DNA of 64,000 nucleotides from Octopus sinensis. Its lineage: Eukaryota. The stretch is taken from NCBI RefSeq assembly GCF_006345805.1, contig NC_042997.1:152024001-152088000 (forward strand). The letters run 5' to 3'. Position numbers and translations under genes: made by a program. The notes beneath the pieces are model-generated. The model was not told the origin of the DNA and made no database searches. It was given only the letters and a program-made list of their open reading frames with translations. Below, in pieces: positions 1,850-64,000 of this stretch; position 1 is the first letter of the stretch, and each line of letters starts with the position of its first letter.

Positions 1850-1982
1850 GTAGGTGAGTGTAAATATATATAAGCATGTGTATGTATTTGTGTGTATGTA
1901 TGCATTTGCATGTATGTTTCTATGTATATATACATATGTTTATATATATATATATGTGTGTATATGTATATGTACATATATA

Positions 1983-2019
<37 letters not shown>

Positions 2020-2134
2020 GTATGTATGCATTTATGTATATGTGTCTGTATATATGTATATATATATATATGTGTGGGTATGTGTATATATATATTTATA
2101 TGTGTGTATATATATGTGTATATATATATATTGT

Positions 2135-2165
<31 letters not shown>

Positions 2166-3243: not shown

Positions 3244-3282
<39 letters not shown>

Positions 3283-3379
3283 AAAAGAGAATGTGCGTGT
3301 AAAGAATGAAAGAAAGAATGTATGTGTAAAGAATGAAAGAAAGAAAGAAAGAAAAAGAGAATGTGTGCGTATATGTTCG

Positions 3380-3417
<38 letters not shown>

Positions 3418-4203
3418 AAATATGTGCAAGTATGATAGAGATTGCATGCCTGATCCTGTATTGGTTAGTGTGCATGTCATCAGGTGTCTCTACATGTGTG
3501 TGTCTGTGTGTGTGTGAGTGATTTTGTAATTGTGTGTGCGTGTGAGTGCGTGTGAATAATTGTGTGCGTGTGCGTGTGTGAGTGCATGTTTGAGTGATTG
3601 TGTGTATGTATGAGTGTGCATGAGTGATTGTGTGTGTGTGCGTGTGAGTGCGTGTGAGTGATTGTGTGTGTGAGTGTGAGTGCGTGTGAGCGATTGTGTG
3701 TGTGAGCTATTGTGTGTGTGAGTATGTGAGTGTGAGTGATTGAGTAATTGTGTGTGCGTGTGAATAATTGTGTGCGTGTGCGTGTGTGAGTGCATGTTTG
3801 AGTGATTGTGTGTATGTATGAGTGTGCACGAGTGATAGTGTGTGTGCGTGTGAGTGCGTGTGAGTGATTGTGTGTGTGAGTGTGAGTGCGTGTGAGTGAT
3901 TGTGTGTGTGAGTGTGTGTGTGAGTGATTGTGTAATTGTGTGTGCGTGTGAATAATTGTGTGCGTGTGCGTGTGTGAGTGCATGTTTGAGTGATTGTGTG
4001 TATGTATGAGTGTGCACAAGTGATTGTGTGTGTGTGAGAGAGAGAGAGAGTGACTGTGTGTGTGTGTGTGTTTGTGAGTGAGACAGAGAGTGAATGTACA
4101 TGTATGCATGTGCATGCCTATATGTGTATTTGTTTTGATGTGTGCGTATAAACCTGTGCGTTGAAATTTGTGATTATTTTCATGCATGTATGTATATGTG
4201 TTG

Positions 4204-4260
<57 letters not shown>

Positions 4261-4265
4261 ATATA
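1850..4265. repeat. Compound microsatellite field: (TA)n, (TG)n, (GACA)n, (GAAA)n and a GT-rich internally duplicated minisatellite at about 3490-4075
   Basis: Direct reading. It accounts for all poly-YI/HT/CV ORFs in the track here. Confidence 0.9.
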
Positions 4266-4568
4266 TATATTATATATGACTGGACGTTTGATTTCAAATG
4301 CATATTCATGTGTGTAAGTTTATAGTGAATAGCTTTTGTGGCTGTACGCATGTTGTGTGCGTGTACATGTTGTATCAGTTTGTGTGTGTGTATGTGTGTG
4401 CGCGTGTGTATATGTGTGTGTTTGCTTGCATGTGGTGAGCTGCTGTGTTAAAACCAATTCTCGTATTCAATAAAAGATAAAAGCTTGTCAAAACTTAAAG
4501 CTACACACAAAACAAAAAAAATTCTCTGCGATGACATCCAAAGGATTCGTGATAAACCACAAAGCGCT

Positions 4569-4569
4569 G

Positions 4570-4636
<67 letters not shown>

Positions 4637-4849
4637 TAATAATAATAATAATAATGATGATGATGATGATAATGACAATAACAACAACAACAATAATAAT
4701 AATAATAATAACAATAATAATAATAATAATAATAAAAATAATAATAATAATAATGATGATGATGATGGCAATAGCAAAAATAATATAACTAATGATAATG
4801 GCATAATAATAATGATAACTTTAATTGTTATTATTATCATTACTACTAT

Positions 4850-4893
<44 letters not shown>
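4569..4893. repeat. Trinucleotide microsatellite block (AAT)n/(GAT)n/(AAC)n/(ACT)n
   Basis: Direct reading. Confidence 0.95.
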
Positions 4894-5950
4894 ACTATCA
4901 TAGGATTGTGTCTCCTTGTGTGTATATGTCTGATTTTATTGCTAGTGCGTACACAAATATGCACAAGAGTCCATGCTTCCGTGTGTGTGTATGTATGTAT
5001 GTCCATGTGTTCGTATGTCATTAAATGATTGTGTGTGTTTGTGTTTAACACTAATTTTACGCTTCATGATGTGTGTATCGCAAGAAACATATATTTGATG
5101 TTGATGTTGTTGTTGTTGTTGTTTTGACGCTGTCCCCGTGTGTGTATGTATATGCATGTGTGCATACGTGAACTTGTATTGGTCTCCATGTATGTGTCTT
5201 CGTCTATATGTAAATCACCTTCCATTTGTGAATTGCTCGGATGAAGTGCTTGTGCACACGTGCTAATCTCTGCATGTATATATGTGTGCATGGGCGAATA
5301 TGTATAAGTGCTGTCCTGAAAATTGCAACACTTGTAAGGAATGTGAATGTGTGCGCATATGCCTAAAACTATGTGCAATAACACATAAATATGATCATGA
5401 ATGCATGCTTTTTCTTTTTGTAAGATGCATGTGTTATCGAGTAAAATGAACGGTACTGTCTGAACAGATAACTCTATACATTAAAAGAGATAACTCGACA
5501 CACTAACAGTATTAGTTAATATTAGATATCTTCTACAGAATTACTACTGAGTGTCTGTACAAAAATTATCATCGAAGCAAGTAATATTTTATTTAGAATT
5601 ATTCTATAGAGCTTAATACAAAATATCATCTGAAAACCAAATCTAAAATTTATACTGAAATCTTTAACTAGTATCAAATATATGATGATGTAGCAGTATC
5701 TTCTTTAAAATTCCTTATCATGCATAGCATGCAAGGTGGGATAGTTTGGTATACCAACTAAAATGTAGAATTAGATCATTCATGCAATGGATGATAACAT
5801 ACACGATGCAAAATATCTCATTGACGATGGTACAATTAACTCAAATATCCAACGACAAAATTATTATTAATGATTTGAGTTGCAAAATTCATTTAAATGG
5901 AATTGAGAGACGGAAACACTACAGAAGCTTGTCGTGCGTGTGTATGTATG

Positions 5951-6044
<94 letters not shown>

Positions 6045-6100
6045 TAAAGATATATATATGTATGCATGTGTGTATATATATATGTGTGCATATATATGTG

Positions 6101-6155
<55 letters not shown>

Positions 6156-6156
<1 letters not shown>

Positions 6157-6256
6157 AGTCTTTTACGTTTCGAGCCTACGCTCTTCACAGAAAAATACAC
6201 AGAAAAAAAACAAGGAGAGAAAAAATGCGTGTAGAAGCTAACGATCTACCATGGCG
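6156..6256 (-). mobile_element. Short dispersed element carrying a minimal hammerhead-like motif (family H2), 3'-truncated by (TA)n
   Basis: Reverse complement cgccatggtagatcgttagc...ctgtgaagagcgtaggctcgaaacgtaaaagactt aligns with the copies at 12411-12599 and 45606-45790. Confidence 0.75.
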
Positions 6257-7494
6257 TCTGACTTCGGACACAGAATGGTCAGACGCGAGAGGGGACAGTA
6301 GGGGAGATAACAAGGTCAAGAGAACACATATATATATATATATATATATAGGATCAACTATATATTTTAACCAGAGATATGCAGTACATCTCAATTCTTT
6401 TAGATACGAGAATCACAGTAAACCGATAATTCTCGCCAGTCACATGCATCATCTTAAAATAGGAATATTCTATATCATTTATCAAGTTCCATAATATATT
6501 CAGGGCTTCCTTACTGTGGTCAACGATCAGCTTGTAAGTTATGTTTGAAAGAGTCATTCCACATATTAAAACATAACTTTTCAATACCACTAAATAAGTA
6601 TAATGAGGCACTAGGTATATGCAACCACGACTTTTTTCATACCTTCAAATTTTACAACAGATCTAAATGCAACCTAAATCATTACATAGCACATATATCG
6701 AATAACTCATAGGTAAACTCCAACAACCTTATTTGGCTTTCCAATTTCTTAATTTGAAAAAATAATTTTGTTTAATAATATATACATACATGTATGAGTA
6801 TGTGTATGGATGCATACGTATACGTATATGTGTGAGTATGTGGTCCTATGTAATAGTGCATATATAGATTTATATGTATGCGTGTGCGCGTGCACATATA
6901 ACTATACATATTCTCCTTTCTCTCACTGATTTATCAGTCCCCACTATCACTTTAGCTAGTACAATCTCTGACTTTATATAAAAATAGACTACGTCTATTT
7001 TTCGAAACTTGACCGTTATATTTTCTTATTCTTTCTTTCCATTTTGAGTTTTACTACTAACTTTTAAACCCCTCCGTAACACATTCTTTATCTATCCCTC
7101 CACCTTTTTGCTTTCATACATATCACCCCAACTTCCACCTCTCACACATATTCTTTCTTTACATTCTTAGCTCTTCCTTCTATCCCTCCTCCTATTTCTT
7201 CTATCTATTTATATCTCTCCTCCCCTCACCCTCTCGGAATATACTGACTACCATCTAGCACTCCTTTTTCATTTTCACTTCCCCTTTCTTTCTTTCCTTC
7301 TTCTTTGCTCCCCCAATCCTTTTGACCAATACTATTTTCTTCCTCCTAACTCTATTTTCTCTATCTAATTCCCCCTACCAGTATATTCTTAAAATGTCAT
7401 TTACACTACAAGATCCCTTCGTATAAACAGCACATGGAATTAATACCTGCACACTATCCATTTGTAATTATAAAATATGAACTATCGAAATTTA

Positions 7495-7860
7495 CATACC
7501 ATGGACAAGAAGCCTTGCTTCCCAACCTCATGGTTCTGGATTCAGTCCCAATGGGTGGCTTCTTGGCAAGCCTCAGGTCAACCAAAATCCTTGAGAGTGG
7601 AATTGGTAGACGGAAACGGAAAGAAGCTCATCGTATATATGTGTCTTTTCGTGTCTATGTTTGTCGCCCTATTACTGCTTGACAACCGGTGCAGATATTT
7701 TACGTTCCCATCACTTAGCGGTTTGACAAAAAGGCCTGATAAAATCAGTACTAGGCTTAATATTAATAGTCTTCGGGTCGATTTGTTCGACTTAAAGCCC
7801 TTCAAGGTGGTGATCCAGTATGGTCGTAGTGAAATGAATGAAAGAAGTAAAAAACCAAAA
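7495..7860 (+). mobile_element. tRNA-derived SINE (family S1, bipartite with internal TA/TG spacer)
   Basis: Head ggacaagaagccttgcttcccaacc...ggattcagtccca and tail ...tcgatttgttcgac...aagtaaaa. Homologous to 51555-51915 (-) and to tails at 10955-11165, 13440-13505 and 20180-20245. Confidence 0.75.
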
Positions 7861-7882
7861 GAATATATATGTATATATATAC

Positions 7883-8184
7883 GTAACCGTGTCCAACCAG
7901 GCTATCAGATGTTGCTACACAACGCTGGTCACAATGTGCTTCACATTGTTTTAGCCTTCATATGTTGCCACTCCGCTGTTTAAGCGAGCAGGCCAACAGA
8001 AGAAAGAGTGAGAGAAAGTTGTGGCGAAAGATACAGAGGGGATCGCCATCACCCCCTGCTGGAGCCTCGTGGAGCTTTAGGTGTTTTCGCTCAATAAACA
8101 CTCACAATGCCCAGTCTGGGAATCGAAAGCGCGATCCTACGACCATGAGTCCGCTGCCCTAACTACTGGGCCATTGAGCCTCTC
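7883..8184 (-). mobile_element. tRNA-derived SINE (family S2)
   Basis: Minus-strand head gaggctcaatggcccagtagttagggcagcggactc...ttcgattccc has A/B-box-like motifs. Near-identical copy at 45268-45570, partial copy at 43300-43498. Confidence 0.85.
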
Positions 8185-8203
8185 ACACACACACACACAC
8201 ACC

Positions 8204-8247
<44 letters not shown>

Positions 8248-8257
8248 TTTTATAGAA

Positions 8258-8311
8258 GGAGCTTCTACAGGACTAGAACTGTTTCATTCAAAGAAATCAT
8301 CAGGAAGCTCC
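8258..8311 (-). ncRNA. Type I hammerhead ribozyme motif (family H1)
   Basis: Minus strand reads GGAGCUUC-CUGAUGA-uuuc uuu gaau-GAAAC AG-uucuaguc-CUG UA|GAAGCUCC. Stem I is 8 bp, stem III is 4 bp (ACAG/CUGU), core is canonical, GUA cleavage triplet with cut between 8266 and 8265. Stem II is short with a U.U closing pair. Confidence 0.75.
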
Positions 8312-8357
8312 TGATGATTTCTTTTGAATAAAACAGTTCTAGTCCTGTAGAAGCTCC
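8305..8357 (+). ncRNA. Hammerhead motif H1, probably inactive copy
   Basis: CUGAUGA...AAAAC instead of GAAAC (G12 to A) and a 1-nt deletion in the 5' strand of stem I. Confidence 0.6.
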
Positions 8358-8478
8358 TTCTATAAAATAAATTAATTTACTCTGCTATGTATTGAGTACC
8401 TTATTTACTGTGGTTAACCCCGACTCAACCCGGAACTCATATATATATAATATAAATATATATATATATAAATATTAC

Positions 8479-8514
<36 letters not shown>

Positions 8515-8552
8515 ATTATATGTATATATATAATATTAATTTATATAGAAGG

Positions 8553-8603
8553 AGCTTCTACAGGACTAGAACTGTTTCATTCAAGAGAAATCTTCAGGAA
8601 GCT
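8553..8603 (-). ncRNA. Type I hammerhead ribozyme motif (family H1)
   Basis: AGCUUC-CUGAAGA-uuuc ucuu gaau-GAAAC AG uucuaguc CUG UA|GAAGCU, with 6-bp stem I. Confidence 0.75.
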
Positions 8604-9118
8604 AGTTAACAAGAATTGTATTGGCATTTATACATTTAGGCAGGTTTAACGGGGTGTTGGTGGGGGACTTTTCTGGGGGTAGGCATAGCGTAAAATATCA
8701 TACTTGGGGGAGTGGTCAAGGAGTCAGTGTTAAATTAGATAGAAGAATAAATAAAAATATAAAAAAAATAAAATAAAAAACCTATATATAAAAAAAACCT
8801 ATATATATATAGGTTTTTTTTATATATAGGTTTTTTATTTTATTTTTTTAATCTTTTTATTTATTCTTCTATCTAATTTAACACTGACTCCTTGACCACT
8901 CCCCCAAGTATGATATTTTACGCTATGCCTACCCCCAGAAAAGTCCCCCACCAACACCCCGTTAAACCTGCCTAAATGTATAAATGCCAATACAATTCTT
9001 GTTAACTAGCTTCCTGAAGTATGATATTTTACGCTATGCCTACCCCCCAAAAAGTCCCCCACCAACACCCCGTTAAACCTGCCTAAATGTATAAATGCCA
9101 ATACAATTCTTGTTAACT

Positions 9119-9169
9119 AGCTTCCTGAAGATTTCTCTTGAATGAAACAGTTCTAGTCCTGTAGAAGCT
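9119..9169 (+). ncRNA. Type I hammerhead ribozyme motif (family H1)
   Basis: agcttc 9119-9124, CTGAAGA 9125-9131, GAAAC 9144-9148, stem III ACAG/CTGT, GTA with predicted cleavage after 9163, gaagct 9164-9169. Confidence 0.75.
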
Positions 9170-9249
9170 CCTTCTATAATAAATAATTTTACTCTGCTAT
9201 GTATTGAGTACCTTATTTCCTGTGGTTAACCCCGAATCAACCCGGGACC

Positions 9250-9300
<51 letters not shown>

Positions 9301-9352
9301 ATATATATATTATATATATATATATATACATGTATCTATATAATGTATATTA

Positions 9353-9451
9353 TATCATAAATATCTACTTACTTACTCGTGCGTTACCTCTACATATATA
9401 TCTATATATCTATCTATCTATCTATATATATATATTATATATATATATATA

Positions 9452-9504
<53 letters not shown>

Positions 9505-10435: not shown

Positions 10436-10507
10436 TATAATACATATATATATATATGTGTGTATATATATATATGTATATAATATATATATTATATATA
10501 TATATTA

Positions 10508-10553
<46 letters not shown>

Positions 10554-10611
10554 TGTGTGTATGTGTGTATATATATATACATATATATAACAAAGTGAAG
10601 TCGTAAGATAC

Positions 10612-10690
10612 CGCACGAGTGGAAATATATGAAAGAAGGTTTGAAAATGCACCTTTTAAAATTGCGTTTTCAAACCTTGTTTCATATATA
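10612..10690. mobile_element. Short hairpin derivative of the same MITE family
   Basis: cgcacgagt...tatgaaagaaggtttgaaaatgca-loop-tgcgttttcaaaccttgtttcata. The start resembles 9728-9774. Confidence 0.6.
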
Positions 10691-10757
10691 CATATATATG
10701 TTGATATATATATACACAATATATATATATAATATAATATAATATATGTATATATAT

Positions 10758-10835
<78 letters not shown>

Positions 10836-12374
10836 TATTATATATATATATATACATACATATATTATATATATACATACATATATATATATATATACAT
10901 ATATATATACACACACGACACATACATACATACATACATACATACACATCTTACTGTCTGACAACCAGTCTTGTTTTACTTACGCTGCAATAAGTGACGG
11001 AAACACAATACAAGAGTCTCTGTAACTTACTGGTCCGGCACAGAGTTTGCTAGAATAGAAACAAAACGTCAAAATAAGTATTAGGGTCGATTTAATTTAC
11101 CAAACCCGTCAAGGGATTTTCAAATATAGTCCTACTCCATTGACTGAATACAGTAAAAGAGTAAAATAGCTTTACATAAATGTTCTAATTTCTTGATATC
11201 TCATTTAAAGTTACAAGAAGTCGGAAATGATATTATAGGATTATTGATAATATACTGTTCAAAAAAAGAACTCTTACATCTTTCATAAAATTAATGATAA
11301 AATAATTGTAATATTATCTTGTGCCACTTATAATGACATGAAATACAAGAATTCACATGTAAATGTTCGATATTTTCTATAGAATTGGTTGTAATCTTAT
11401 ATGAGCCGTACTGTTTGGAACTAGAAATCTTATTACGAAAAACCAGTAAAGCCAAACAGCAACAACATTTCTGGAAGAATTACTGATATCTCGTGCAGAA
11501 TTTATAACAAGATATAATGTTAAAAGAGCATTGTGTAGAATATCTTCTGATAATGCACAATACAAATGAAACCCGTGATAGCTCGTGTAGAATGATTATC
11601 AAGTAGAATTGCTGATGCTTTATAATGAATATATTATAACACATAACCACAATGTACCAGATTCAATCTATTGTAAATTTTGTAGGATTGATAATGATAG
11701 TAACAAAAATATCATAGCGATTTAAAGATACACAGCAAAATCAAAGATAGCGTAACAAAAAATATAATGGGAAAATCGTGCTAATCTCTGTAGAATTAGT
11801 GATAACCCATAATGCGCAATATATTTTGAGATATGAGTGATAATGTGCACTGTCGAAAATATCATCTTGCCGTATTATATATTTTCTTAAGATTTCAAGA
11901 TCAAAACATAAAATCAAAATTGAACTTACAACTCATATATGATTTGTGCATGTGTTAAACATGCAACACTCATATCGTGTCGTATTACTGATATTTCCTT
12001 TAAAATTACTATCATTTATGTATTGTTATCGTCTATAAATTTGCTATCAGGTAAAATTTGTAATATCTTCTATAAGACTGTGGAGAAACAGGCAATACAA
12101 TATATCGACTTTATTAAGTTGTATCACCCTCAAAATTTGTGATCATACACATAGACATAATTATAATCTAACATTTATAAAACGAGACACAGTTATGGCA
12201 TAGGCAAACAATACGGATCTTAGAATGATATCCCTATGCAGATCTCAGCTAATTCGGCATACTAAATGTTATGAAGAATGCGAGATACCATTTATAGAAT
12301 TAATAGCACAGACAACGAAGATATGGCGAAAATCTGACTACTAGCGTGAAGCGAAGCGATATTTGTAGTAATAT

Positions 12375-19247: not shown

Positions 19248-20155
19248 ATGCCATCAGTGACAAAGGCAGTCATGCTTAGCAGCTATGCCGACGACACAAA
19301 AGTTGCACAGTCAGTCAAGGAAACCTCTGATGCTACGCTCTTACAGAAGGATCTAGATACCATCTATACATGGGCTGAGGATAACAACATGCAATTTAAT
19401 GCAAGTAAATTCCAGGCCCTCCGCTACCAGTTAAGCACTGCTCGGGAAACACGACATCAGTACGTTGGACCAAGTGGAGCAACGATCCAAGAATCAAATA
19501 CGGTGCGTGATCTTGGAATAGAAATGAGCAACAATGCCTCATTTCACACACATATCAAGAAAATGGTTGCAGTATCCAGAAGACTGACTGGTTGGATCCC
19601 GAGAACCTTCCGCACAAGGGACCAAGAAACTACGATGACTCTATGGAAGTCATTTATCCTCAGCCGCCTGGACTACTGCTCTCAGCTATGGTCACCTTAC
19701 ACTACAAGGACGATAGCAGAGCTTGAAGCAGTCCAACGACATTACACAAAGAAAGTAGCATCAATGGAACGATTGAGTTACTGGGATAGGTTGAAAGAGC
19801 TGCGACTCTATTCCCTGGAACGAAGGCGGGAGAGGTATGCAGTGATATATATATGGAAGATAGTGGAAGGACTGGTACCAAACTTTGGAATAAAGAGCTA
19901 TACCACACCACGAACAGGACGTCACTGTGCTGTCCCCATTGTGCCGACTGCTTCATCTCGGGCAAGGACGATGTACTGCAATAGCTAGGGTTTCAAGGGC
20001 CCACAGCTGTTTAACTCTCTGCCGAAGCATCTGAGGAGCCTCCATGAAGTGGATGTAGACGTTTTCAAACGTGAACTTGACCTCTGGCTCGCCGAGATCC
20101 CGGATGAGCCAATATCTAAGCAAGAAACTCAAAAAAGGGCAAAAGCCGCTCCGAC
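19248..20155 (+). mobile_element. 5'-truncated non-LTR retrotransposon (CR1/L2/Crack group) RT C-terminus
   Basis: 246-aa ORF with SYADDTKV, LQKDLDTIYTWAEDNNMQFN and LERRRERYAVIYIWKI. The frame continues after one TAG at 19986 with GPQLFNSLP...FKRELD...IPDEP. Confidence 0.9.
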
Positions 20156-40596: not shown

Positions 40597-40993
40597 TAAT
40601 GTCACAAAAAACGGTGATTCAGTCGTTTAGTAAATATTATCTAACATCCTACACCCAATGTTTCAAAGACTTGGCATCTCCAGTCTGACCCACATCTGTC
40701 ATTTGTACGATTAGTGTTTGCTCCTCTGAACTAGCCTCTGACATATTTCAACTCTTGTCTAGATTCTCTTAAACCCCTACTGTGGCTCCGTGTGCTAAAC
40801 ATTTTCTCCACCCATTCTTCCCCACTGGCGTAACCCTAGAATTCTCTCCTCGCCTCTGTTTTTCTTCATATATGTTGACCTATACAAAACTCAAACTGAA
40901 CATGATATTATTCTTACAAAGCAAAAAGGACCGAAATATATTATAGCCGCTCTTCTGTTTCTTCTATCTGGTAATTAATAATTTCTAGCATAA

Positions 40994-41231
40994 AGGCGAC
41001 GAACTAGCAGAAACGTTTGCACGCCGTACGAAATGTTTAGCGGTATTTCGTCTGCCTTTACATTCTGAGTTCAATTTCCGCCGAGGTCGACTTTGCCTTT
41101 CATCCTTTCGGGGTCGATAAATTAAGTACCAGTTACGCACTGGGGTCGATGTAATCGACTTAATCCGTTTGTCTGTCCTCTCTGTGTTTAGCCCCTTGTG
41201 GGCAATAAGGAAATAAGAAACGTTAGCACGC
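40994..41231 (+). mobile_element. Host SINE S3 head plus an inserted chimeric SINE unit (S3 body + retrotransposon-like tail)
   Basis: Head ggcgacgaactagcag, site copy aaacgtttgcacgc 41011-41024, body, tail ...gtgtttagccccttgtgggcaataaggaaataag, site copy 41218-41231. Confidence 0.85.
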
Positions 41232-42455
41232 TTCCGGCGTTTTGGAAAGTGTACGTAAGTCACTTTGATGGTATTTTTCACAGAGTTAACATCGTTTATT
41301 TTGTATCAGTGTTTTTTAAAAACACTTTGTTAATTGTTTTTGTGCTGCTTTGCAACAATTTGTTTGTGCTTTCTCTCCTCTTTCGAAGAGAGTTAGCTAT
41401 GGAGAATAAGAAGTCTATTTTTTTTTTAGACTTTAGTGGGCTTGAACTATTGCCATCAGAAGAAGAACTGCTTAGAGCAGTAGGAAAAATGGATGAAATA
41501 ATTAAGAAAAATGAAAAAAAGAAAACTCCGCAGAATTGACAAGACAGGAGGAAGATGAGATTGACATCAAAAGAGGGGAACAATGTGAAGTTGTCCCCTC
41601 CAAAGGAAATGCTGGTAGGTATCAAAAAGAAAACAATCACATACAAAACATTCTCAACGAAAGCAAGGATTGAAAACATAAATACAAGCCAAATAGAGAA
41701 AGTAGTAAGGCCCATGTGGCAGGATACAGTCTTTGTAAGGAGAGGAACGATATTTGGTACAGTGGAAGTGAGAAATAGGCAGCAAAGAAACAGGCAGCAA
41801 AACAATAAAGGACGAAGAAGTAGTGTTGTTGCCCACTTATACGGGGAGAAGGGCAATTAGGACCAAAGTTGAAGGTATGCAGTCCTCAAATGAAGTGAGG
41901 ACGGTATAGCGGTGCTCCAGGCCACGAGCACCAGATGCGAGATGCGGAGGGAAAAAACACTCGAGATGACAGTGCAGGCATCAGCAGAAACCCTGGAAAA
42001 GATAGTAGAGATGGTCTTGTTTGATGACGCAGAGATGAGGGTCAAGGTGGAGGGCAGAGAATCAAGATGCTACAAATGTGGTCTAAATGGCCACATTAGA
42101 GCAGACTGCCCTTCAAAGGAAAATTTGGAGACAGTACTGAAACATATAAGTGGATATAAGTGGTGAGAGATAGAGATGGACAGGAAGGCGCTACCGGGAT
42201 TTTCGACGTACGAGGGGGTACTAGAACTATATGGGGTTGACATTTCAGAAGGAACGGGGGTACAAAAGATGATAAAGTGTAGAAATGGGGCCGCCCAGAA
42301 ATAGGGCTGAATTGCCCCATTCCATTTATTCATTTTCATGTTATTTATCTTTGTCATACGTTTATTTTTTGATTTGTCGTTCTATGTCACCACATGTGAT
42401 GTGTTGTCCCCTTTATGTTGCCCCCCCCCCCCCTGGCAGGCAATAAAGAATCAAG
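41232..42455 (+). mobile_element. 1.22-kb non-autonomous non-LTR element encoding a disrupted ORF1/Gag-like protein with CCHC zinc knuckle (L1/Tx1-like by inference)
   Basis: ATG at 41399, frameshifted pieces 41399-41539, 41555-41860 and 41912-42166. RVKVEGRESRCYKCGLNGHIRADC (CX2CX4HX4C at 42068-42109). Flanked by a 14-nt duplication (41218-41231 / 42456-42469). No RT detected. Confidence 0.75.
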
Positions 42456-42650
42456 AAACATTAGCACGCTGGGCGAAATGCTTAGCGGTATTTCGTCTGA
42501 CTTTACGTTCTGAGTTCAAATTCTACCGAGGTTGACTTTGCCATTCATCCTTTCAGGTTCGATAAATTAAGCACCAGTTGCGTACTGGGGTCGATCTATC
42601 GACTGGCCTCCTCCCAAAAAGTTTCAGGCCTTGTGCCTAGAGTAGAAAAG
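42456..42650 (+). mobile_element. Remainder of host SINE S3 (body + native tail)
   Basis: aaacattagcacgctgggcgaaatgcttagcgg...gagttcaaattc...tcgactggcctcctcccaaaaagtttcaggccttgtgcctagagtagaaaag. Confidence 0.85.
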
Positions 42651-43299
42651 AATAATTCCTTGCATAAGCACACAAACGTATATTTATATTATAGTAGAGA
42701 GCAACAGATGGCCTCAGATCGTGATTGATATTTTATTAATCGTCTCAGAAATGATTAAAGGCAAAGTTAACCACAGCAGTAAGTGAACTCAAGACGTAAG
42801 AAAACAATAAATACTTCTGCTCTGATAATTCTAATAATCTAAAGCTTTGACTGACTCGTCGGTTATAAAATCACGTCGCCTTACTATTTAAAACAAAGGA
42901 AGAACACAAGCAAAATATAGTTTTAGATAATAAGGACTGAACGCATTATATCTACAGCAGAGAAACCTTTCATCGTAGACCTGTTTGATCAGAGGTGAGA
43001 GAGGCTAAGCAGAAATGTTCTAGTCAGTCTCTACACCAATCATAGGCAAAATATAACCGCAGGACATTCTGAAGGTTATATTTTACATAAAACAACTTCA
43101 AATTTTTTAGTAGTGCTACTTGCCTGGTGATGAGGTATATCTCGTGCAGCCCGCTTCTCGTAAAAGGTTGCTTATTCCTGCTCTACACATTTATCCTTTA
43201 TTTTATGCGCGATTTTCAAGCCTAGCCAGGCTCATGGGCCGGTCTCCCAGTTTCTGTGACGTATGTATTTCCCCCCAGCTGGACGGGACGCCAGTCCAT

Positions 43300-47641: not shown

Positions 47642-49814
47642 CAGTAGTTTTATTTTTATAGCATGCTTTCACTTCACTACCGAGCGCAGCTCTGTGTGCC
47701 TTAGGTATGTGCTGTGATTTGTTGTGATGCTCTGATGGTTATTGTATGGAAAGTGTTCTGCGTAGGATGTTTGCAGTGCCTAGTAGTGCAATTTTCTGTA
47801 TGTTATATGTGTTTGTAAGTCCTGGTGTTTTTGTTATGTATTTGTCTGAATATTTTTTTATCATGCCTAATGCACCTACTATGATAGGAATTGTTTCTGT
47901 TTTTAGATTCCACATTCTGGTTACCTCTATTTCCAGGTCTTTGTATTTTGAAAGTTTTTCCATTTCTTTTAGAGACACGTTGTCATCTGCTGGTATTGAT
48001 ACATCAATTAGAAAGCATTTTTTTTTCTTCATGATCTCTGACAACTATATCTGGTCTGTTGGCCTTAATTTCTCTATCTGTGTGTATCGGCATATCCCAG
48101 AGTATGGTTGCTTTCTCGTTTTCTGTGACCTTTTCTGGTGTGTGCCTATACCATCTTTTTTCTGTTGTTATTCCATAATGTTGGCATAGCTTCCAGTGTA
48201 TGTAGGTTCCAACTCTGTCATGTCTGTGAGTATATTCCTTCTTAGCCAGGACTGGGCAGCCAGAGATAATATGATTTATTGTTTTTTGTCCATCTCCACA
48301 TATTCTGCAGTTACTTGTTATATTTCTTTTCATTACATGTTTTTGGTAATTTCTGGTGGGGAGGCTTTGGTCTTGTGCTGCAATTAAAAATCTCTCTGCT
48401 TTGAGTCCTGAGCTTCTCAACCATTGCTGGGATTTTTCTTTGTCTATTTCTTTTGCGTTTAGTTTAGTCCAGTATTTACCATGAAGGGGCTTTTCTTGCC
48501 ATCGTTTTATCATGGTTCGTTGCTGTTCTATTTTTAGTTTGGATTTCATTTGTTTTATAGCTTTTGTTGTATCTTCATCTTCTTCTTCTTCTTCTCTTCT
48601 TCTTCTTCAAATTTATTGGGTGGTATGATTTCTTGTTTGTATTTGTCAGCTTCCTTAAATACTGAGAACAGTTTTTTGTTTTGCTCGTGTTTTGCCGCTA
48701 TTTGTATCAGTTTTCCTTCCTTCTGATGTAGATATTTTTGCAGTCCTATGGTGGTTATTTTATAGTAGTTTTCCAGCTGTATAAGGCCTCTACCACCTTC
48801 TATACGTTGTATATATAGTCTTTCTATGTCAGATTTTGGGTGATGCATCCTAGATCCTGTCAGTATTTTTCTTGTTTTCCTATCTATTTTGGTTAGTTCA
48901 TTTCGTGTCCAGTTAAGGATATTGTAGTTGTAACTTATAACTGGGACAGCTAAAGTGTTAATACCTATTATCTTGTTTTTAGCATTGAGCTCTGTTTTTA
49001 GTATTGATCTAACTCGTCTATTTTTTAAATTTTATTTTCTCTTTCATTTGTGTGTGTTGTGTCTTATCTAGTTCATGGATTCCTAAGTATTTGTAAGTTT
49101 GGCTTTGGTCTAATTCTTTTATTTCATTGGTTTTATCTAGTGTGATGTTGCTACTCTTAACTAGTTTTCCTCTTTTCAGGGTTACTTTGGCGCATTTTTC
49201 TAATCCAAATTTCATATCTATTTCTTTGGTAAATCCATGAACTGTCTTTAATAGTGTTTCCAGCTGTTTGTCATTTGCAGCGTATAGTTTTAGGTCATCC
49301 ATATATAAAAGGTGGCTGATCGTTTTGCCGTAACATTTATATCCGCATCCAGTTCTATTTAGCATATCAGATAGAGGTGACAGTGCCAAGCAGAAAAGGA
49401 GTGGAGAGAGCGTGTCTCCCTGGAATTTCCTCTTCTAATGGGGATGGCTTTGGTTTTCATGAGTCCCTCTTTTGCTTGGAGCTGTAGCACTGTTTGCCAT
49501 TTATTCATAGAGTGCCCTATGAATTTTATATTTGTTGGTGCTACTTTGTTAATGGCTAGTGTTTCGAGGATCCATGTGTGGGGGATGCTATCAAACGCCT
49601 TTTTGTAGTCGATCCAGGCCATACCGAGGTCTTTCTTCTTTCTGTGGCTGTCTTCAGTTATGGCTTTATTAATCATTAGTTGATCTTTACAGCCATATGA
49701 GCCTTTGCGGCATCCTTTCTGCTCTTCTGGAAACAGGTTGTTTTCGTCCAGGTGCTTGTTCAGCCTTTGCGATATCACTGCAGTAAATGCCTTGTACATT
49801 GTCGATATCACTGC

Positions 49815-49815
<1 letters not shown>
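47642..49815 (-). mobile_element. Best-preserved R4/Dong-type retrotransposon, 5'-truncated, flanked by (TAA)n on both sides
   Basis: RT: EQKGCRKGSYGCKDQL, AWIDYKKAFDSIPH, LLYMDDLKLYA. CCHC: CRICGDG..TINHIISGC..HDRVG. RLE: KANRPDIVV, FLIDVSIP..KLSKYKDL. Several frameshifts. Confidence 0.92.
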
Positions 49816-49893
<78 letters not shown>

Positions 49894-49899
49894 TTATCA

Positions 49900-49930
<31 letters not shown>

Positions 49931-49981
49931 TTATTATTATTATTATTTTATTATTATTATTATATTATTATATTATTATTA

Positions 49982-50028
<47 letters not shown>

Positions 50029-50039
50029 CATATGAAAAC

Positions 50040-51560
50040 TCATAGCTTATTTAGCTGGTTATGATGGAAAGTGTCAGCTATCCACAACCAGCAGACTAAG
50101 GTGACATTTGTTTACTGGTCATGCTTCAAACATCCTGGGAAGAATTTTTGCAGTTCCAAGCAATTCTGATTTTTGTAGGTGTTCTATCTTCATACTTGCA
50201 CCAAACCTATTTAACCATGTGGATAGTTGAGCGCTGATACTTCCAAGTGCTCCAATTACTATTGGTATCATGTCTACTACCTTCATTGACCACAACTTTC
50301 GTATTTCTCCCTTCAAATCGTCATAATTGTTTATTTTTTCTTCTTTCACATTGATCCTGTTGTCACCGGGACATGCTATGTTGATTATCATAGACGTTCT
50401 TTCTTTTTTATTCACCACAATAATATCCGGTTTCCGATGTCTGGTTGGGTGATCACACTGGATCATTACATCCCACAGGACTTTGCAGTTCTCATTTTCG
50501 GTGACTCCTTCTGGAGTTTTCTCACACCACGTCTTTGCTCGTTGTAAACCGTGATTTTCACAGAGCTCACAATGGATCATTCTTGCTATATTGTCATGGC
50601 GTCTGTTGTATTCGCGTTGTGCCAATTCCAGGCATTCGATAAGCCCTCTCACCACACACATTCTGCATTAGTTGCTATCGGTAGTGTTGTCTATTCTGCA
50701 CTTCTTATAGTTCGTCCTTAACGCTTGTTTCTGAGCTGCGCATGTTAGTACTTATATATATATATTCAGGTCACTCCTCCTCATCCATAGCCACCGGTCT
50801 TCTGTATCTGTCTTCGCGTTCATATCTCTTGCAAACTGACTACATTTTCTTTTCATTCCATGCTTTTATTATTTGTTTTTTGTTCATTTCTTGTTTAAAT
50901 TTTTCTTTAGTTACACAATTTTCAGTTTTGATGACGCCGGCCTTCTTCGTGTATTTCAACAGTGGATCCATACCATTTTTTGTATACCACCCTAAGTTTG
51001 TTTTCCTCAACTTCGATACAGTCCTGGCAAATGATCAAACTTCTCTCACCTTTTCTCCTGGACAAGTACAGCTTATCGGTGTCACTCTTAGGGTGGAAAG
51101 CTCCGTGTACAGTCAACATTTTTCTGATCTTGGTATCCATTTTCTTCCTTTCTCTCTTTTGCTATTTTATTATTCCCGCTCCACACCGAAGTGATGCTAT
51201 CGTCCACGTATTATCTGCTTGGATTTTATTCCATCCAGTCAATTTGAGCGCAACACCATCCTCACTTGCTCTTTCATTTCCTTTTCTATTATCTCGTTGA
51301 ACCTCCAGTACACAAAAGTGTTTGTCTCCCTCCGTTTCAATTTATTTAATCAAGTCTCTATTTGGTAATTCTATCCCTGCTAGAGACTGCACCTTCTATC
51401 TTTTTAGGTAGATTATTCTGCACTTCTTGAGTCCAAACTCCATTCTAATATCAGTACTAAAACAGTGCACCATGTTCATCAAGGAACTCACTTGTGTCTC
51501 ATCTTTGCTATACAGATTTAAATCATCCATGAATTGGAGGTGGTTGATTGTTTGGGATTT
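50040..51560 (-). mobile_element. R4/Dong-type copy of a different subfamily with internal deletions
   Basis: RHDNIARMIHCELC...LWDVMIQCDHPTRHRKPDIIVV...PIVIGALG; AFHPKSDTDKLYLSR; HLQFMDDLNLYSK. Confidence 0.85.
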
Positions 51561-51915: not shown

Positions 51916-52559
51916 ACGCCTGAAAAAATATTAAAAACGTGAAAAAATATATTTTTTAATGTATAAATATGTTCAGAGCACGCTACGTGACAACACTCTA
52001 CATATATTCATCTGATGCAGGTATTTACAGACTTACAAGGAAATTCAGGCAAACTGCTACGAAATATCAAGGATTAAATGCTGAATACGTAACGATCACG
52101 AGAAAATAATCAATCATGTTGTTTCTGACGACGCAGTGTTATCCATGTAGAATATTATGAATAGAGATACGATTGCGTATGGTGCTTTCATCCATTGGAA
52201 ATTAGGTAGGAATTATTGAAATCCCTGCAGAAAGGACATGGTAAATATAAACATTACAAAATTATTCCGTGCAAATACAGCTGTAACAAATGGATCTGTT
52301 AGCTCTCCACCATAACGAGCACTTACCATTTATCTTTGCAGCATGTGCAACTGGGGACTTTTTCCAAGTGTGAGTAATGGGTTGATAGTTAGTATTATTT
52401 CGGCTAATTCTCACTGCGCATCGAATCACGTCTCTCGTGGCACATATATAAAGGTTACTTTTGGCATCTACCAACCTATTTTGTTTGCTCTCAGTTCAAT
52501 TCCTGAAGGGTTAATATACAACTGTGAAGTTTTATTTCGCTTATTCCGAATTATGACAC

Positions 52560-52750
52560 ACAAGTTCAACAAAAGAGGGAAAAGGAGAGGAAAGAAGAAG
52601 AAAGGGGGGAGGAGGAGAAAGAAGAAGAAGAAGAAGAAGAAGAAGGGAAGGAGGAAGCAGTGAAAGAAGAAGAAGAAGAGAAGAAGAAGAAGAAGAAGGA
52701 GAAAAATAAAAAGAAGTGGATAAGAGAAAGAAGAAGGGGAGGAAGAAGAA

Positions 52751-52798
<48 letters not shown>

Positions 52799-52799
52799 A

Positions 52800-52838
<39 letters not shown>

Positions 52839-52952
52839 GGGAGGAGGAGGAGGAGGTGGAGGAAGAGGAGGAGGGGAAAGAAGAAGAAAAAAGAAAGAGA
52901 AGGGGATAAGAGAAAGAAGAAGTTAAGAGAAAGAAGAAGGGGAGGAATAAGA

Positions 52953-52992
<40 letters not shown>

Positions 52993-53345
52993 GGAGGAGG
53001 AGGAGGAGGAGGAGAGGAAAGAAGAAGAAGAAGAAGAAGAAGAAAAGAAAGAGAAGGGGGTAAGAGAAAGAAGAAGAAGAAGAAGAAGAAGAAGAAGAAA
53101 AAGAAGAAAAAAGAGAAAGAAGAAGGGGAGGAGGAAGAAAAAGAAGAAGAAGAAGAAGATAAAAGAAAGAAGAAGGGGAGGAGGAAGAAAAAGAAAAAGA
53201 AAAAGAAGAAAAGAAAAAGAAGAAGAAGAAGATAAAAGAAAGAAGAAGGGGAGGAGGAAGAAAAAGAAAAAGAAAAAGAAGAAGAAGAAGAAGAAGAAGA
53301 AGAAGAAGAAGAAGGAGAAGGGGAGAAGGAGGAGGAGCAGTAGCA
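52560..53345. repeat. ~780-bp polypurine tract (GAA)n/(GGA)n/(GAT)n with internal duplications
   Basis: Direct reading. Confidence 0.95.
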
Positions 53346-53389
53346 ACAGAAAAGAAGAAGTAATGTTTACATTTTACCATTTATTAGCG

Positions 53390-57363: not shown

Positions 57364-57409
57364 TGTGTGTGTGTGCTTATTTGCATGCATGTATGTATAA
57401 ATCTTTTCT

Positions 57410-57642
57410 TATTTCTTTACTGCCCACAAGGGGCTACACACAGAGGGAACAAACAAGGACAGGCAAACGGATTAAGTCGATTATATCAACATCAGTGCGT
57501 AACTAGTACTTATTTAATCGACCCTGAAAGGACGAAAGGCAAAGTCGACCTCAGCGGAATTTGATCTCAGAACGTAGCGGAAGCCGAATTACCGCTAGGC
57601 ATTTCGCCCGGCGTGCTAACGTTTCTGCCAGCTCACCGCCTT
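57410..57642 (-). mobile_element. Solo full-length chimeric SINE (S3 head + body + shared retrotransposon tail) with ~20-bp TSD
   Basis: Flanked by atgtatgtataa(a)tcttttct at 57389-57409 and 57643-57662. Confidence 0.8.
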
Positions 57643-58747
57643 ATGTATGTATAATCTTTTCTGCTATAAGCATAAGCCCTGAAATTTTATATTTTTTTTT
57701 TGAGGGAGGTAGGGAGATAGTCGATTACATAGACCCCAGTACATGACATGTACTTATTTTATCGGCCTCGAAAGGGTGAAAGCGAAGTCGACCAAGGCAG
57801 AATCTGAACTCGGAATAACGATGATGATGATACTCTGCTTAACATATTAAGTTTACTTTATTCGTGAAATTGATTTGTAGGTAATAATACTCGTATGTAT
57901 AATGTCATGACTAAAATGTGTGTATATGCATGCATATGTTTGAATGTAAGTACGTATGTATTGTGCACGTACTAAGAACAAAAGTATTCTTTTATGATGG
58001 TCGGGTCCATTATACATAAGTACAGCACTTCGAAATAGTTAAAAATTATGTGTTATAGAAATTAAACTGTTATTCATAGGACATATTCACCATGGTACAA
58101 CATTTATTTAAATTAACTTATTGTAAAGCTTAAAATGGAGAACATTTGGAACATGAATACATAAGAATTCTAAATAATAAAACAAGTTAATAAAATACTA
58201 ACTATAAATTTTGAGAATTTACAGTTAGAATAGGAGTAATGTATTGACTTCGCAAACAATAGAATGTTAGTACATGCTAACGTATTTAGAAAAAAATCGC
58301 CATATTTGTTGTAAAACAACACCAGGCAGAAAATTTGAAAGGTGAGGTGAATGCATTAAGACAAAATAACAATAGCTGTAATAATATAAATATTATGAGA
58401 AATGTTAAGAGTATATACTGGTCATCTAATATACGAAATAGCTAAAGACGAATAATTGGCAATTATTGATATATAGTATGTTTTTAATTGAAGATATAAA
58501 TCTATGCAGCAAACGTCGATTACTGACGTAATGGATTAATAGTAGTTATGAAATGATATTAGTAAAGTTGTAAAAACTGCGTCAATATCAAGGGTAAAAA
58601 AAATCATATAGGTATATAATATAATAATATACAGTTTTGTGAACTATTTGTATGTGAACTCCCTTAGCAGTTAATGTCTATAACTGACTTTATATTGATA
58701 ATCTTGAAATAACTAACCTCTTTCATTTTGTAATATTCTTTCCCTAA

Positions 58748-59384
58748 AGGCACGACGAGCTGGCAGAAACGTTAGCACGCCGGGCGAAATGCGTAGCCGT
58801 ATCTCGTCTACCGTTATGTTGTGAGTTCAAATTCCGCCGAGGTCGACTTTGCCTTTCATCCTTTCGGGGTCGATAAATTAAGTACCAGATGAATACTGGG
58901 GTCGGTGTAATCGACTTAATCCGTTTGTCTGTCCTTGTTTGTCCCCTCTGTGTTTAGCCCCTTGTGGGTAGTAAAGAAATAGAAACGTTAGGCGCCGGGC
59001 GAAATGCTTAGCGGCATTTCATCTGCCGTTACGTTCTGGGTTCAAATTCCGTCGAAGTTGACTTTACCTTTCATTCTTTCGGAGTCGATAAATTAAGTAC
59101 CAGTTACGCACTGGGGTTGATGTAATCGACTTAGTCCCTTTGTCTGTCCTTGTTTGTCCCTCTATGTTTAGCCTCTTGTAGGCAATAAAGAAATAAGAAA
59201 CAGCACGCCGGGCGAAATACTTAGTGGTATTTCATCTGTCTTTACGTTCTGAGTTCAAATTCCGCCGAAGTCAACTTCGCCTTTCATCCTTTTGGGGTCG
59301 ATAAATTAAGTACCAGTTGCGTAGCGGGGTCGATCTAATCGACTTGCCCCCTTCCAAAAAATTTCGAGGCCTTGAGTAGATAGG
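58748..59384 (+). mobile_element. SINE S3 array: head + 2 chimeric units (~215-bp period) + terminal body with native tail
   Basis: Site copies at 58766-58780, 58982-58995 and 59197-59208. Outer direct repeat aatattctttc at 58732-58742 and 59385-59395. Confidence 0.88.
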
Positions 59385-59735
59385 AATATTCTTTCGCTTA
59401 GTTTGTATTAATTATATGCCTGCTATTTGCTATTGACAAGAGAAGTAGAAATTTAGTTAGAAGATATAATGGGAAAAAGTTATTAATGGGACGAAGAGCA
59501 TTAGTTAATTTTATTGTACAAAAGTAAGAATTGAGAAAGTACCTGAAAATATTTATTAAAGACAAATTATTATATCTTCGTAAATTAGTTGAGAAGGATA
59601 TGGTGGAATATAAACTTGAATTATTAAATATATCAGAATATCAGAACCCAGAGTAAACAATTGATCTGTAATAGAGTTCAGGAGGTTGTATTTAAGTAGC
59701 TCTCTATTTGTATCAGAGTCCATCCTCTATGTGTC

Positions 59736-62512: not shown

Positions 62513-63018
62513 GGTGTATATACATAAACATATACACAATGAGTGAGATAAAATGTTGGTGGGATCAGACAAATAGAAATACATGCAGACAGACATACAG
62601 ACAGACAGACAGATACACACAGATAGACTGGGACATACATACATGCATACATACATGCATACATACATACATGCACACGAACACGTACGCACATGCATAC
62701 ACACATATATATTTGTGTTCACGTATATGATGTGTAGCTTTATCTTTTTTTTTATTAACAGTTTTTAGAATTCCCTTGGAAGTCCTTTGCACTTTCTTGA
62801 AACATTCAATTTCCTAAAGCTACGATCAACGTCTCTACACATACATAAGGTTTACAAGCTTTAGTATTGGAAACAAAATGCAAGGAACACGTGAAAATAC
62901 GAAGGAACGGTGATACAAAAGATAAAAAAAATAAAGACTACCGTGTTTTCAATGCAATATATGTTTAAAAGCAAAACGATGTTCATATATAAACGTTTAT
63001 TTATATACATGTGTGTGA

Positions 63019-63049
<31 letters not shown>

Positions 63050-63287
63050 TAATATATATATATATAATATATATATATTATATATATATATATATATATG
63101 TGTATATATATATATATACACGAATATATATGTATGTGTGTATATATGTGTGTGTGTGTATATATTATATATATATACGCATGCATATATATATATGTAA
63201 ATATCTATGTATGTATGCATATATACATACATATATTTATGTGTGTGTGTGTGTAAATATATACGTATGAATTTATGTATATGTATG

Positions 63288-63322
<35 letters not shown>

Positions 63323-64000
63323 GTATGTTATGTATAAATATGTGCGTGCGTATGTATGTATGTGTATGTGTATATATGTGCATATGCCCGAGTATGTGGT
63401 TATATACATATGTGTGTGTGAGTGAGTTTGTGTGTGTTTGTGCGTGTATTTATAGATGCTTATATACAAGCCTTGATACTATCAAATTGTGTATGTATAT
63501 ATATATATATATATCTATATATATATATATATCTATATATATATAATATGCATGTATGTATGTATACTATACATAACAAGTGCAGTTATTAGCGTTGAAG
63601 TGGGGATGGTCTTCAATAAAATGAAAGGAAAATGGGAATACGAGATTGGCAGATGTTCTCGACAAATCCCCCATTAAACTAGGCGATGCTTTTACATCTT
63701 CAGTGAAAATATTTGACAGAATTGAATCCATATCAATCAGATTTAACTAAAAAAAATCTTGCGTTTCTATTTTTACAGACTTAAAACATTTTATTTATTC
63801 TTCTCTCCAGGCTTGCACACAAAATGGGAAAATAATGTACGTCTTTCTTGTAGTCCACTTTCATAGACAAGTAATCAAGCAACAGAAGTTTTAGGCCCGT
63901 GTATAAAACGATATAAATATATAAATAATAACAGTATTACGGTATATGCTAGCAGCATCGAGTCTCGCAATGCGTCGTTGGCACACTTATTTTCAGGTTC

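Follow-up and report, generated by a model that had tools for sequence, protein, structure and literature searches.

Several retrotransposons of the L1 superfamily are known to prefer a defined site in a multicopy sequence. In crocodilians, the Tx1-Mar long interspersed elements (LINEs) and the short interspersed element (SINE) SINEU-3 insert into Mariner-N4_AMi with a 16-bp target-site duplication (TSD), where tandem copies sandwiching the TSD result from sequential insertion (Kojima 2015, PMC4494074), and families differ in their preference, with 90%, 23%, and 13% of copies in the target (PMC4494074). Likewise, Tx1L, which inserts into Tx1D in Xenopus, and Keno, Kibi, and Koshi, all of the Tx1 clade, use an apurinic/apyrimidinic endonuclease (APE) that picks a defined multicopy sequence, i.e., a transposon, small nuclear RNA (snRNA) genes, or microsatellites (PMC4494074). 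In mammals, HAL1 keeps the 5' untranslated region (UTR), the first open reading frame (ORF1), and the 3' end of L1 without ORF2, and propagates as a lineage (PMC5753468). L1-Tx1 families have also been described in Octopus vulgaris, where SINEs make up 11.6% of the genome (PMC13282606). The present analysis concerns a nested locus at positions 40977-42667 of a 64,000-nt stretch of Octopus sinensis DNA (contig NC_042997.1, positions 152,024,001 to 152,088,000; hereafter, the window), in which one SINE is split within its head by a second SINE and by a 1.22-kb element encoding only an ORF1 remnant. This locus is probably a three-storey retroposon nest built by stepwise target-primed reverse transcription (TPRT), with integration into the SINE head being preferential and non-exclusive. 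Given that target-preferring L1/Tx1-type LINE systems are already known, the unusual features, judging from sequence comparison, would be the SINE head as the target and the molluscan half-LINE.

Similar to the Tx1-Mar/SINEU-3 system, an L1-superfamily LINE and a tail-sharing SINE in octopus appear to prefer one site in another multicopy transposon, with a TSD of ~16 bp. The two systems differ in that the crocodilian target is a DNA transposon, whereas the octopus target is the head of a SINE from the same superfamily as the one mobilized; furthermore, a half-LINE that encodes ORF1 is among the passengers in octopus, which is a mollusc host, and the Tx1 membership of the octopus LINE is putative. 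Tx1L, Keno, Kibi, and Koshi are described as largely confined to their targets, whereas about half of the tail-sharing octopus elements lie elsewhere and the specificity of their endonuclease is one that we infer. As in HAL1, three octopus members share the ORF1-only architecture, two of them with intact ORFs (384 and 463 amino acids). Unlike in HAL1, the octopus ORF1 has one CCHC knuckle and, as predicted from a structural model, tandem RRM-like domains instead of the L1 coiled coil, RRM, and C-terminal domain, the 3' end is a specific ~50-nt tail instead of poly(A), and the elements arose independently in cephalopods.

The host of the nest belongs to SINE subfamily B (SINE-B), with its head at 40994-41024 and its body and tail at 42470-42650. 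It is bracketed by an outer 17-bp TSD, of which the left copy AATAATTTCTAGCATAA (40977..40993, +) and the right copy AATAATTCCTTGCATAA (42651..42667, +) are identical at 15/17 positions and are the sole two matches in the window at up to two mismatches (0.1 expected). The initial annotation of the window had reported this 17-nt bracket around a split SINE, an identical 14-mer occurring three times inside it, and two inserts, namely a SINE unit and a 1.2-kb element with a CX2CX4HX4C motif. The bracket was confirmed and both inserts read as described; three copies of the 14-mer are indeed present at 41011 (AAACGTTTGCACGC), 41218 (AAACGTTAGCACGC), and 42456 (AAACATTAGCACGC), but only the second is exact, the other two carrying one mismatch each, and the true length of the repeated block is 15 nt (GAAAC...; 41010-41024, 41217-41231, and 42455-42469), again with only the middle copy, GAAACGTTAGCACGC, exact. 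As such, this observation was partly confirmed, being essentially right and in need of small corrections.

Read along the forward strand, the left TSD is followed by nt 1-16 of the host SINE head (aggcgacgaactagca, 40994..41009), which align with the heads of full SINEs at 57645 (-) and 58746 (+), and then by the first 15-mer copy (GAAACGTTTGCACGC, 41010..41024), corresponding to SINE nt 17-31. Insert 1 (41025..41216, +) is the remainder of a subfamily A SINE (SINE-A) from nt 32 to its end, recognized by the diagnostic bases of that subfamily and by a LINE-derived A tail (...gccccttgtgggcaataaggaaataa); its 5' boundary is ambiguous because insert 1 is homologous to its target. The second 15-mer copy (41217..41231, +) gives way to non-SINE sequence, which is insert 2 (41232..42454, +; 1,223 bp), a HAL1-like element derived from an L1/Tx1-type LINE, encoding ORF1 only and now dead. 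At the third copy (GAAACATTAGCACGC, 42455..42469, +) the host SINE resumes at nt 17, and its body with the native B tail (...ggccttgtgcctagagtagaaaag; 42470..42650, +) runs up to the right TSD. At no more than one mismatch, the 15-mer occurs six times in the window versus 0.00 expected, and the three occurrences outside the nest are the heads of other SINE copies. Since the 15-mer corresponds to SINE nt 17-31, it is informative only where non-SINE DNA comes next, as at 41231/41232, where the second copy is followed by ttccggcg.... Local alignment of this 5' region of the element with the SINE was no better than with shuffled sequences, i.e., revealed no similarity, and a reading of the 1.22-kb element as a diverged SINE was ruled out on this basis.

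The decisive case is a second O. sinensis locus, L131, in which an outer duplication (attatttattgtttcaca / attattattgtttcaca) encloses, in order, a SINE head ending in ...gctggcaGAAACGTTAGCACGC, a 1.6-kb ORF1-only element, an A-like tail, and GAAATGTTAGCACGC with the rest of a SINE-B. SINE nt 31 adjoins the 5' end of the element at both loci (window 41231/41232 and L131 9457/9458), and both the window element and the L131 element are flanked on either side by the 15-bp GAAACGTTAGCACGC. Two inserts at two loci with different outer TSDs therefore share one insertion point and one 15-bp duplication, so that the pattern first proposed from the window alone, in which retroposons nest within a SINE at one position and leave a duplication of constant length, is repeated at the same nucleotide. 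Overall, six junctions between a retroposon tail and SINE nt 17 were found, all in the sense orientation: 41216/17, 42454/55, 58981/82, and 59196/97 in the window, 69649/50 in the O. bimaculoides locus L001, and 11055/56 in L131. Besides the ORF1-only elements, the units joined at nt 17 comprise three SINE-A and one SINE-B. Two of the window junctions belong to a SINE trimer (58732..59398, +) enclosed in a single 14-bp TSD (AATATTCTTTC[C/G]CT; 58732-58745 / 59385-59398), which has the architecture of the main locus without the non-SINE insert: within 58746-59384, unit 1 combines a full head with an A tail, units 2 (58982) and 3 (59197) begin at SINE nt 17 after A tails, and unit 3 ends in a B tail. 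In L001, a SINE unit begins at nt 17 straight after a B tail, and its body (69650-69760) carries a (TTAGGG)3-4 telomere-type repeat at a GCTTAG motif.

For the tally, a sample of ~206 kb of octopus DNA (205,842 non-N bases with ~26 SINE heads) was used, which is small and biased, consisting of loci recovered via ORF1 homologues and of the window chosen by the initial annotation. In this sample, the site was used by 5/11 A-tailed non-autonomous elements (8 SINE-A and 3 ORF1-only) versus 1/11 elements with B tails. The probability that a random insertion would hit the exact position is ~6e-5 per insertion, and six hits were seen; in a sample of this small size, between about one in five and one in ten SINE heads had been hit. 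Scanning a metagenome collection with the bare 15-mer, a pattern too short for the purpose, yielded 120 chance matches and no octopus DNA, and scanning viral contigs with a 26-mer yielded 0 matches.

Insert 2 of the window consists of a 5' UTR of ~168 nt (41232-41398), an ORF1 remnant (41399..42304, +), and a 3' UTR with tail of 150 nt (42305-42454), the A-like 3' tail being ttgtcccctttatgttgcccccccccccccctggcaggcaataaagaatcaa (42404..42454, +). The remnant contains 5 in-frame stops and 2 frameshifts, shifting from the frame of 41402 to that of 41400 around 41805-41899 and back again, and also carries a deletion relative to its homologues; this copy is a dead member of its protein family. Its CX2CX4HX4C knuckle (CYKCGLNGHIRADC, 42068-42109) matched Pfam zf-CCHC (E=4.1e-5, 23.9 bits; cut-off 20.8), no Pfam match to Transposase_22 (L1-type ORF1) was obtained for the window ORF1, and no remnant of a reverse transcriptase (RT) or APE was detected in the 1,223-bp element. 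None of 20 window ORFs had an exact counterpart in the protein collection. A homology search with the stop-joined window ORF returned no match, a search with a 13-sequence alignment, in which Lys/Glu-rich words saturated the word filter, returned P0151 only, and a full HMMER scan with a stop-free 90-aa piece of the window ORF returned many multi-knuckle proteins as well as ~12 proteins whose single uninterrupted match covered almost all of the query. In the alignment, the homologues extend over the window ORF between its N-terminus and the knuckle and share the motifs KKxIxYKTxS, RGxxFGTVEVR, VLLPxYxGRR, ILQAT, and VEGRxPRCYKCGxxGHxRAxC. The window ORF1 is 35% identical to that of the L131 element, which is intact (E=5e-41), and aligns end to end with P0095, the ORF1 of a full LINE in O. 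vulgaris; together with the common tail, this agrees with the earlier description of the 1.22-kb copy as a non-autonomous derivative lacking ORF2. An AlphaFold model (pLDDT 71) of the relative P0095, rather than of the window copy, matched tandem-RRM proteins at E ~1e-5 with TM-scores of just ~0.2, and the predicted fold preceding the knuckle thus weakly resembles that of tandem-RRM proteins.

Two O. sinensis relatives of this element, of 1.6 kb in L131 (intact ORF of 384 aa) and 1.7 kb in L135 (intact ORF of 463 aa), have in common a post-ORF1 region (70.7% over 133 nt), an A-like tail, and the lack of ORF2. No DNA-level alignment was found between the 5' UTRs of the window and L131 elements. 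The L135 element (2489-4186) lies outside any SINE and is flanked by a perfect 16-bp TSD, GGATGTGATATAATGA, indicating that conventional TPRT, with a stagger of 15-16 bp, mobilizes the ORF1-only elements. The ORF1 of the first LINE of an array lies ~280 bp downstream of the L135 element, whose target may have been the 5' UTR of that LINE; alignment of the element to LINE 5' UTRs was no better than that of shuffled sequences except for a poly(A) run. The 5' termini of the window, L131, and L135 elements, read by eye, are alike (ttccggcgtttt / gttcggtcgtgtt / cgtgttt), which, taken with the shared flanking 15-mer, shows that the 15-mer is flank and not element. Further ORF1-only relatives were present in short Logan contigs, and relatives also occur at L009/L010. 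Moreover, a ~1.7-kb Logan contig from an octopus-like sample (L002-L007; SRR11869384-94), identical in six runs, harbors an intact 294-aa ORF1 (P0151) and no ORF2, and looks like an expressed ORF1-only element. These members suggest that ORF1-only elements form living lineages, and the ORF1-only state appears to be a lineage and not an accident.

The initial annotation had also predicted autonomous L1-like relatives with APE and RT, and such LINEs were found in L008 and L135 (APE, RVT_1, and zf-RVT). P0095 is the ORF at 10001-11026 of L008, a locus of O. vulgaris (assembly per 10.1101/2023.05.16.540928), and lies directly upstream of an ORF2 whose APE starts at ~11340. The L008 ORF2 at 6058-9453 contains Exo_endo_phos (1.9e-15), RVT_1 (8e-31), and zf-RVT (5e-9) domains and is collinear with human L1 ORF2p over aa 3-868 (human aa 6-891, E=2e-71). 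The 3' end of the L008 LINE, ttgtcccctctttgttggccccttgtgggtaaataaaataaaac, is the same tail as in SINE-A and the window element, so that the putative 3' recognition end of an L1-superfamily LINE is common to SINE-A and the 1.22-kb element. L135 likewise contains full LINEs whose ORF1 is homologous, whose ORF2 encodes APE, RT, and zf-RVT, and whose tail is the same. The assignment of the octopus autonomous LINEs as L1-like is thereby supported by their domains and homology, with the Tx1-type label being putative. None of the full LINEs examined was located in a SINE head. In L008 (4437-19185), at least three LINE units, 99.2-99.5% identical, are arranged head to tail with a 5,278-bp period up to an assembly gap; in L135 (4190-20850), the four LINEs come from different subfamilies, are 74-93% identical to the L008 unit, and meet at junctions of the form 'tail|ACTGAATACTCGTCAT', and head-to-tail full LINEs were also present in L133/L134. 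For such arrays, either the LINE targets the 5' ends of resident copies or the RT jumps end to end between templates. In addition, other LINE fragments at 19248-19988 (+; RVT_1) and 48004-50661 (-; RVT_1 and zf-RVT) of the window lack the A-like tail, indicating that several LINE families coexist there.

Alignment of the SINE copies in the window revealed the two subfamilies labelled A and B, which differ in body bases (agttAcgCac/gatGtaatcgacttaatcc in A and agttGcgTac/gatCtaatcgactgg in B) and in their 3' tails (ending in ...ttgtcccctctgtgtttagccccttgtgggcaataaagaaataa in A and in ...ggccttgtgcctagagtagaaaag in B). The SINE-A markers of insert 1 are ...agttacgcactgg...gatgtaatcgacttaatcc... 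followed by the A tail. The SINE-A tail is the LINE tail, and the SINEs are flanked by TSDs of 13-17 bp. The related tail reported earlier for both inserts is real, since pairwise local alignments beat 1974-1996 of 2000 shuffled controls, and a 12-sequence alignment revealed the conserved blocks ttgtcccctct.tgtt and gccccttgtggg.aataaagaaat. SINE copies in the O. bimaculoides and O. sinensis loci were 80-96% identical to those in the window, and the six-frame translation of the locus SINE matched an annotated O. bimaculoides protein. The target had originally been placed in the A box of a tRNA-derived SINE, which was unsupported: ARAGORN found no tRNA gene in the SINE, Rfam returned nothing for it either at the gathering threshold or at E<=10, and in the 10-copy SINE consensus the A-box candidates TGGCAGAAACG (nt 11-21) and TAGCACGCCGG (nt 23-33) are each three positions off the A-box consensus. 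The insertion site would lie within the first of these candidates, itself a weak match, and AGTTCAAATTC in the same consensus is B-box-like. A-tailed elements integrate elsewhere too, as shown by a solo SINE-A (57405..57645, -) that lies at a non-SINE site, has a full head and an A tail, and is flanked by a TSD of its own. Over 57405-57816 (-), 13 bp separate the B tail of a SINE-B truncated at its 5' end from the integration site of this SINE-A, whose TSD is ATT(T)ATACATACAT; SINEs also cluster at one another's 3' ends.

According to the proposed stepwise TPRT, a SINE with a B tail would first have integrated and generated the 17-bp TSD. Two A-tailed RNAs would then, in either order, have integrated in the sense orientation at the same phosphodiester of the host, between SINE nt 16 and 17 (gca|GAAACG), with each event duplicating the next 15 bp after nicking of the bottom strand opposite gca|GAAAC and of the top strand 15 nt further downstream. 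One RNA would be SINE-A, to whose cDNA the top-strand 3' end (...GTTAGCACGC) is expected to be complementary; because this cDNA holds the same 15 nt, its 5' end would be joined by homology and the unit would be seamless. The other RNA would be the ORF1-only, internally deleted half-LINE of an L1/Tx1-type LINE, and since its cDNA has no homology to the target, the 15-bp TSD is visible. The enzymes (APE endonuclease and RT) are likely to be provided in trans by autonomous LINEs with the same tail, which may serve as the recognition handle, and the endonuclease, perhaps aided by pairing of a few bases of the nicked TTTC with the A-rich tail end, could confer a strong, though not exclusive, preference for this site. 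As each hit restores the site in both TSD copies, repeated hits would build head-to-tail arrays. Microhomology as the sole cause of the hotspot was rejected, because GAAAAG is absent from the end of most solo A tails, and B tails end in AGAAAAG yet seldom use the site. Sequential re-use of one site is habitual, as L131 (9406-11500 and 17999-18470) contains two TSD-SINE-TSD-SINE-TSD sandwiches, in which two SINEs inserted successively at the same non-SINE site and left three TSD copies.

Several points weigh against a targeted, stepwise origin. Apart from the size and bias of the sample described above, 6/11 A-tailed elements lie away from the site, and the generic TSDs in all loci start AATAT-like, unlike GAAACG. 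The SINE-in-SINE units carry no independent TSD evidence, because insert and target are homologous. No second copy of the exact 1.22-kb family was found by BLAST in any recovered locus, and only the knuckle region matched relatives (74-88% over 32-78 nt). The examination of other copies and their flanks, which the initial annotation had suggested as a check, was thus negative for the element's own family and positive for the sister family at L131, which shows the same flank; as such, the recurrence would rest on the sister family and the SINE units. Taken together, the interpretation in the initial annotation is partly supported: its core, a preferred SINE-head site and a non-autonomous ORF1-only L1-like element, appears right, whereas its details were overstated: the target is not fixed or exclusive, given the L135 element outside SINEs and the A-tailed elements off the site, and the Tx1 and A-box labels went too far.

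Among the alternatives, a single-event chimera retains the most weight and is nevertheless unlikely. Here, TPRT on a SINE-B RNA would be accompanied by template switching of the RT, near the 5' part, to A-tailed RNAs, and the 15-mers would be copied RNA. L1-type RTs do make chimeric retrocopies (e.g., U6-L1), and like these the octopus composites contain at least two RNAs head to tail inside one TSD; indeed, each composite is enclosed by one outer TSD, an outcome likewise expected of a single chimeric event. In L135 (649/650), an A tail is joined to a SINE at ~nt 50, off the site, and full LINEs of different subfamilies are joined tail to 5' end in the arrays of L135, L008, and L133; both patterns fit template jumping and further count against the stepwise scheme. 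A GAAA homology between SINE nt 17-20 and the A-rich tail ends is also possible. Template switching has also been invoked for SINEU (PMC4494074). However, acceptor RNAs in U6-L1-type chimeras are entered by the RT at their 3' end, and donor junctions vary, whereas the octopus junctions are fixed at SINE nt 16/17 and 31/32. The RT would have to land exactly after SINE nt 31 in two independent events (window and L131) involving unrelated elements, to depart six times from SINE RNAs precisely at nt 17, with another 16 nt left to the 5' end, and to make three or four jumps for the window locus. Neither the plain 16-bp TSD of the L135 element nor the sandwiches at non-SINE sites, which show sequential insertion, fit this explanation, and the asymmetry between A and B tails is unexplained by it.

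It is even less probable, to the point of being hardly credible, that the 15-mer or the whole 31-nt SINE head belongs to the ORF1-only element as a captured 5' end, with no TSD logic at the 5' junction. Both the window and L131 elements are immediately preceded by SINE nt 17-31, and SINE heads can join retroposon 5' ends (PMC4494074); yet their ORF1s are 35% identical and their 5' UTRs unalignable, while the 15-mers match the present SINE consensus at 15/15 positions, although an ancestral fusion would have diverged. Furthermore, the L135 relative starts with a homologous 5' end right after its non-SINE 16-bp TSD and has no SINE head, and the downstream junction of tail and nt 17 would still require a hotspot. 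An origin without targeting, through unequal recombination or gene conversion between SINEs, an assembly artefact, or chance adjacency, can practically be set aside despite the very high density of SINEs (~26 heads in 206 kb) and the gaps in assemblies of such regions (L008 and L132), since SINE recombination cannot put a 1.2-1.6-kb non-SINE element between two 15-mers, the same architecture recurs in the window, O. bimaculoides L001, and O. sinensis L131, and six hits were observed at an exact position with so small a chance of being hit.

If preferential integration into the SINE head is accepted, a broader but tentative interpretation, for which the odds are slightly short of even, is that an octopus L1/Tx1-like LINE lineage favors one defined site within the head of the dominant SINE, and perhaps the 5' ends of its own copies, that SINE and half-LINE passengers pile up head to tail inside SINE heads, and that this self-reinforcing safe-harbor niche fed the SINE expansion. 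About 12% of octopus genomes consists of SINEs, whose expansion has speculatively been tied to cephalopod genome evolution. In that case, each SINE-into-SINE hit would provide the incoming copy with a whole promoter-bearing head taken from the target, the head-to-tail arrays so frequent among SINEs would be explained, and SINE counts would partly reflect nested events, with effects on age and copy-number estimates. The system would also provide a natural safe-harbor example outside ribosomal DNA, snRNA genes, and microsatellites. Intact ORF1-only elements would be a molluscan parallel to mammalian HAL1 and could help to test the role of the ORF1 protein for a non-autonomous element, and a defined 15-bp target with a putative cognate APE endonuclease would be testable in vitro. 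As regards its surroundings, the window is AT-rich and full of microsatellites and retroposons, and its longest 'ORFs', none of them gene-like, arise from microsatellite or low-complexity tracts (CA/TA-rich, CT-rich, and AAT-rich) at 1876-5024, 10492-10947, 52468-53380, and 62861-63469.

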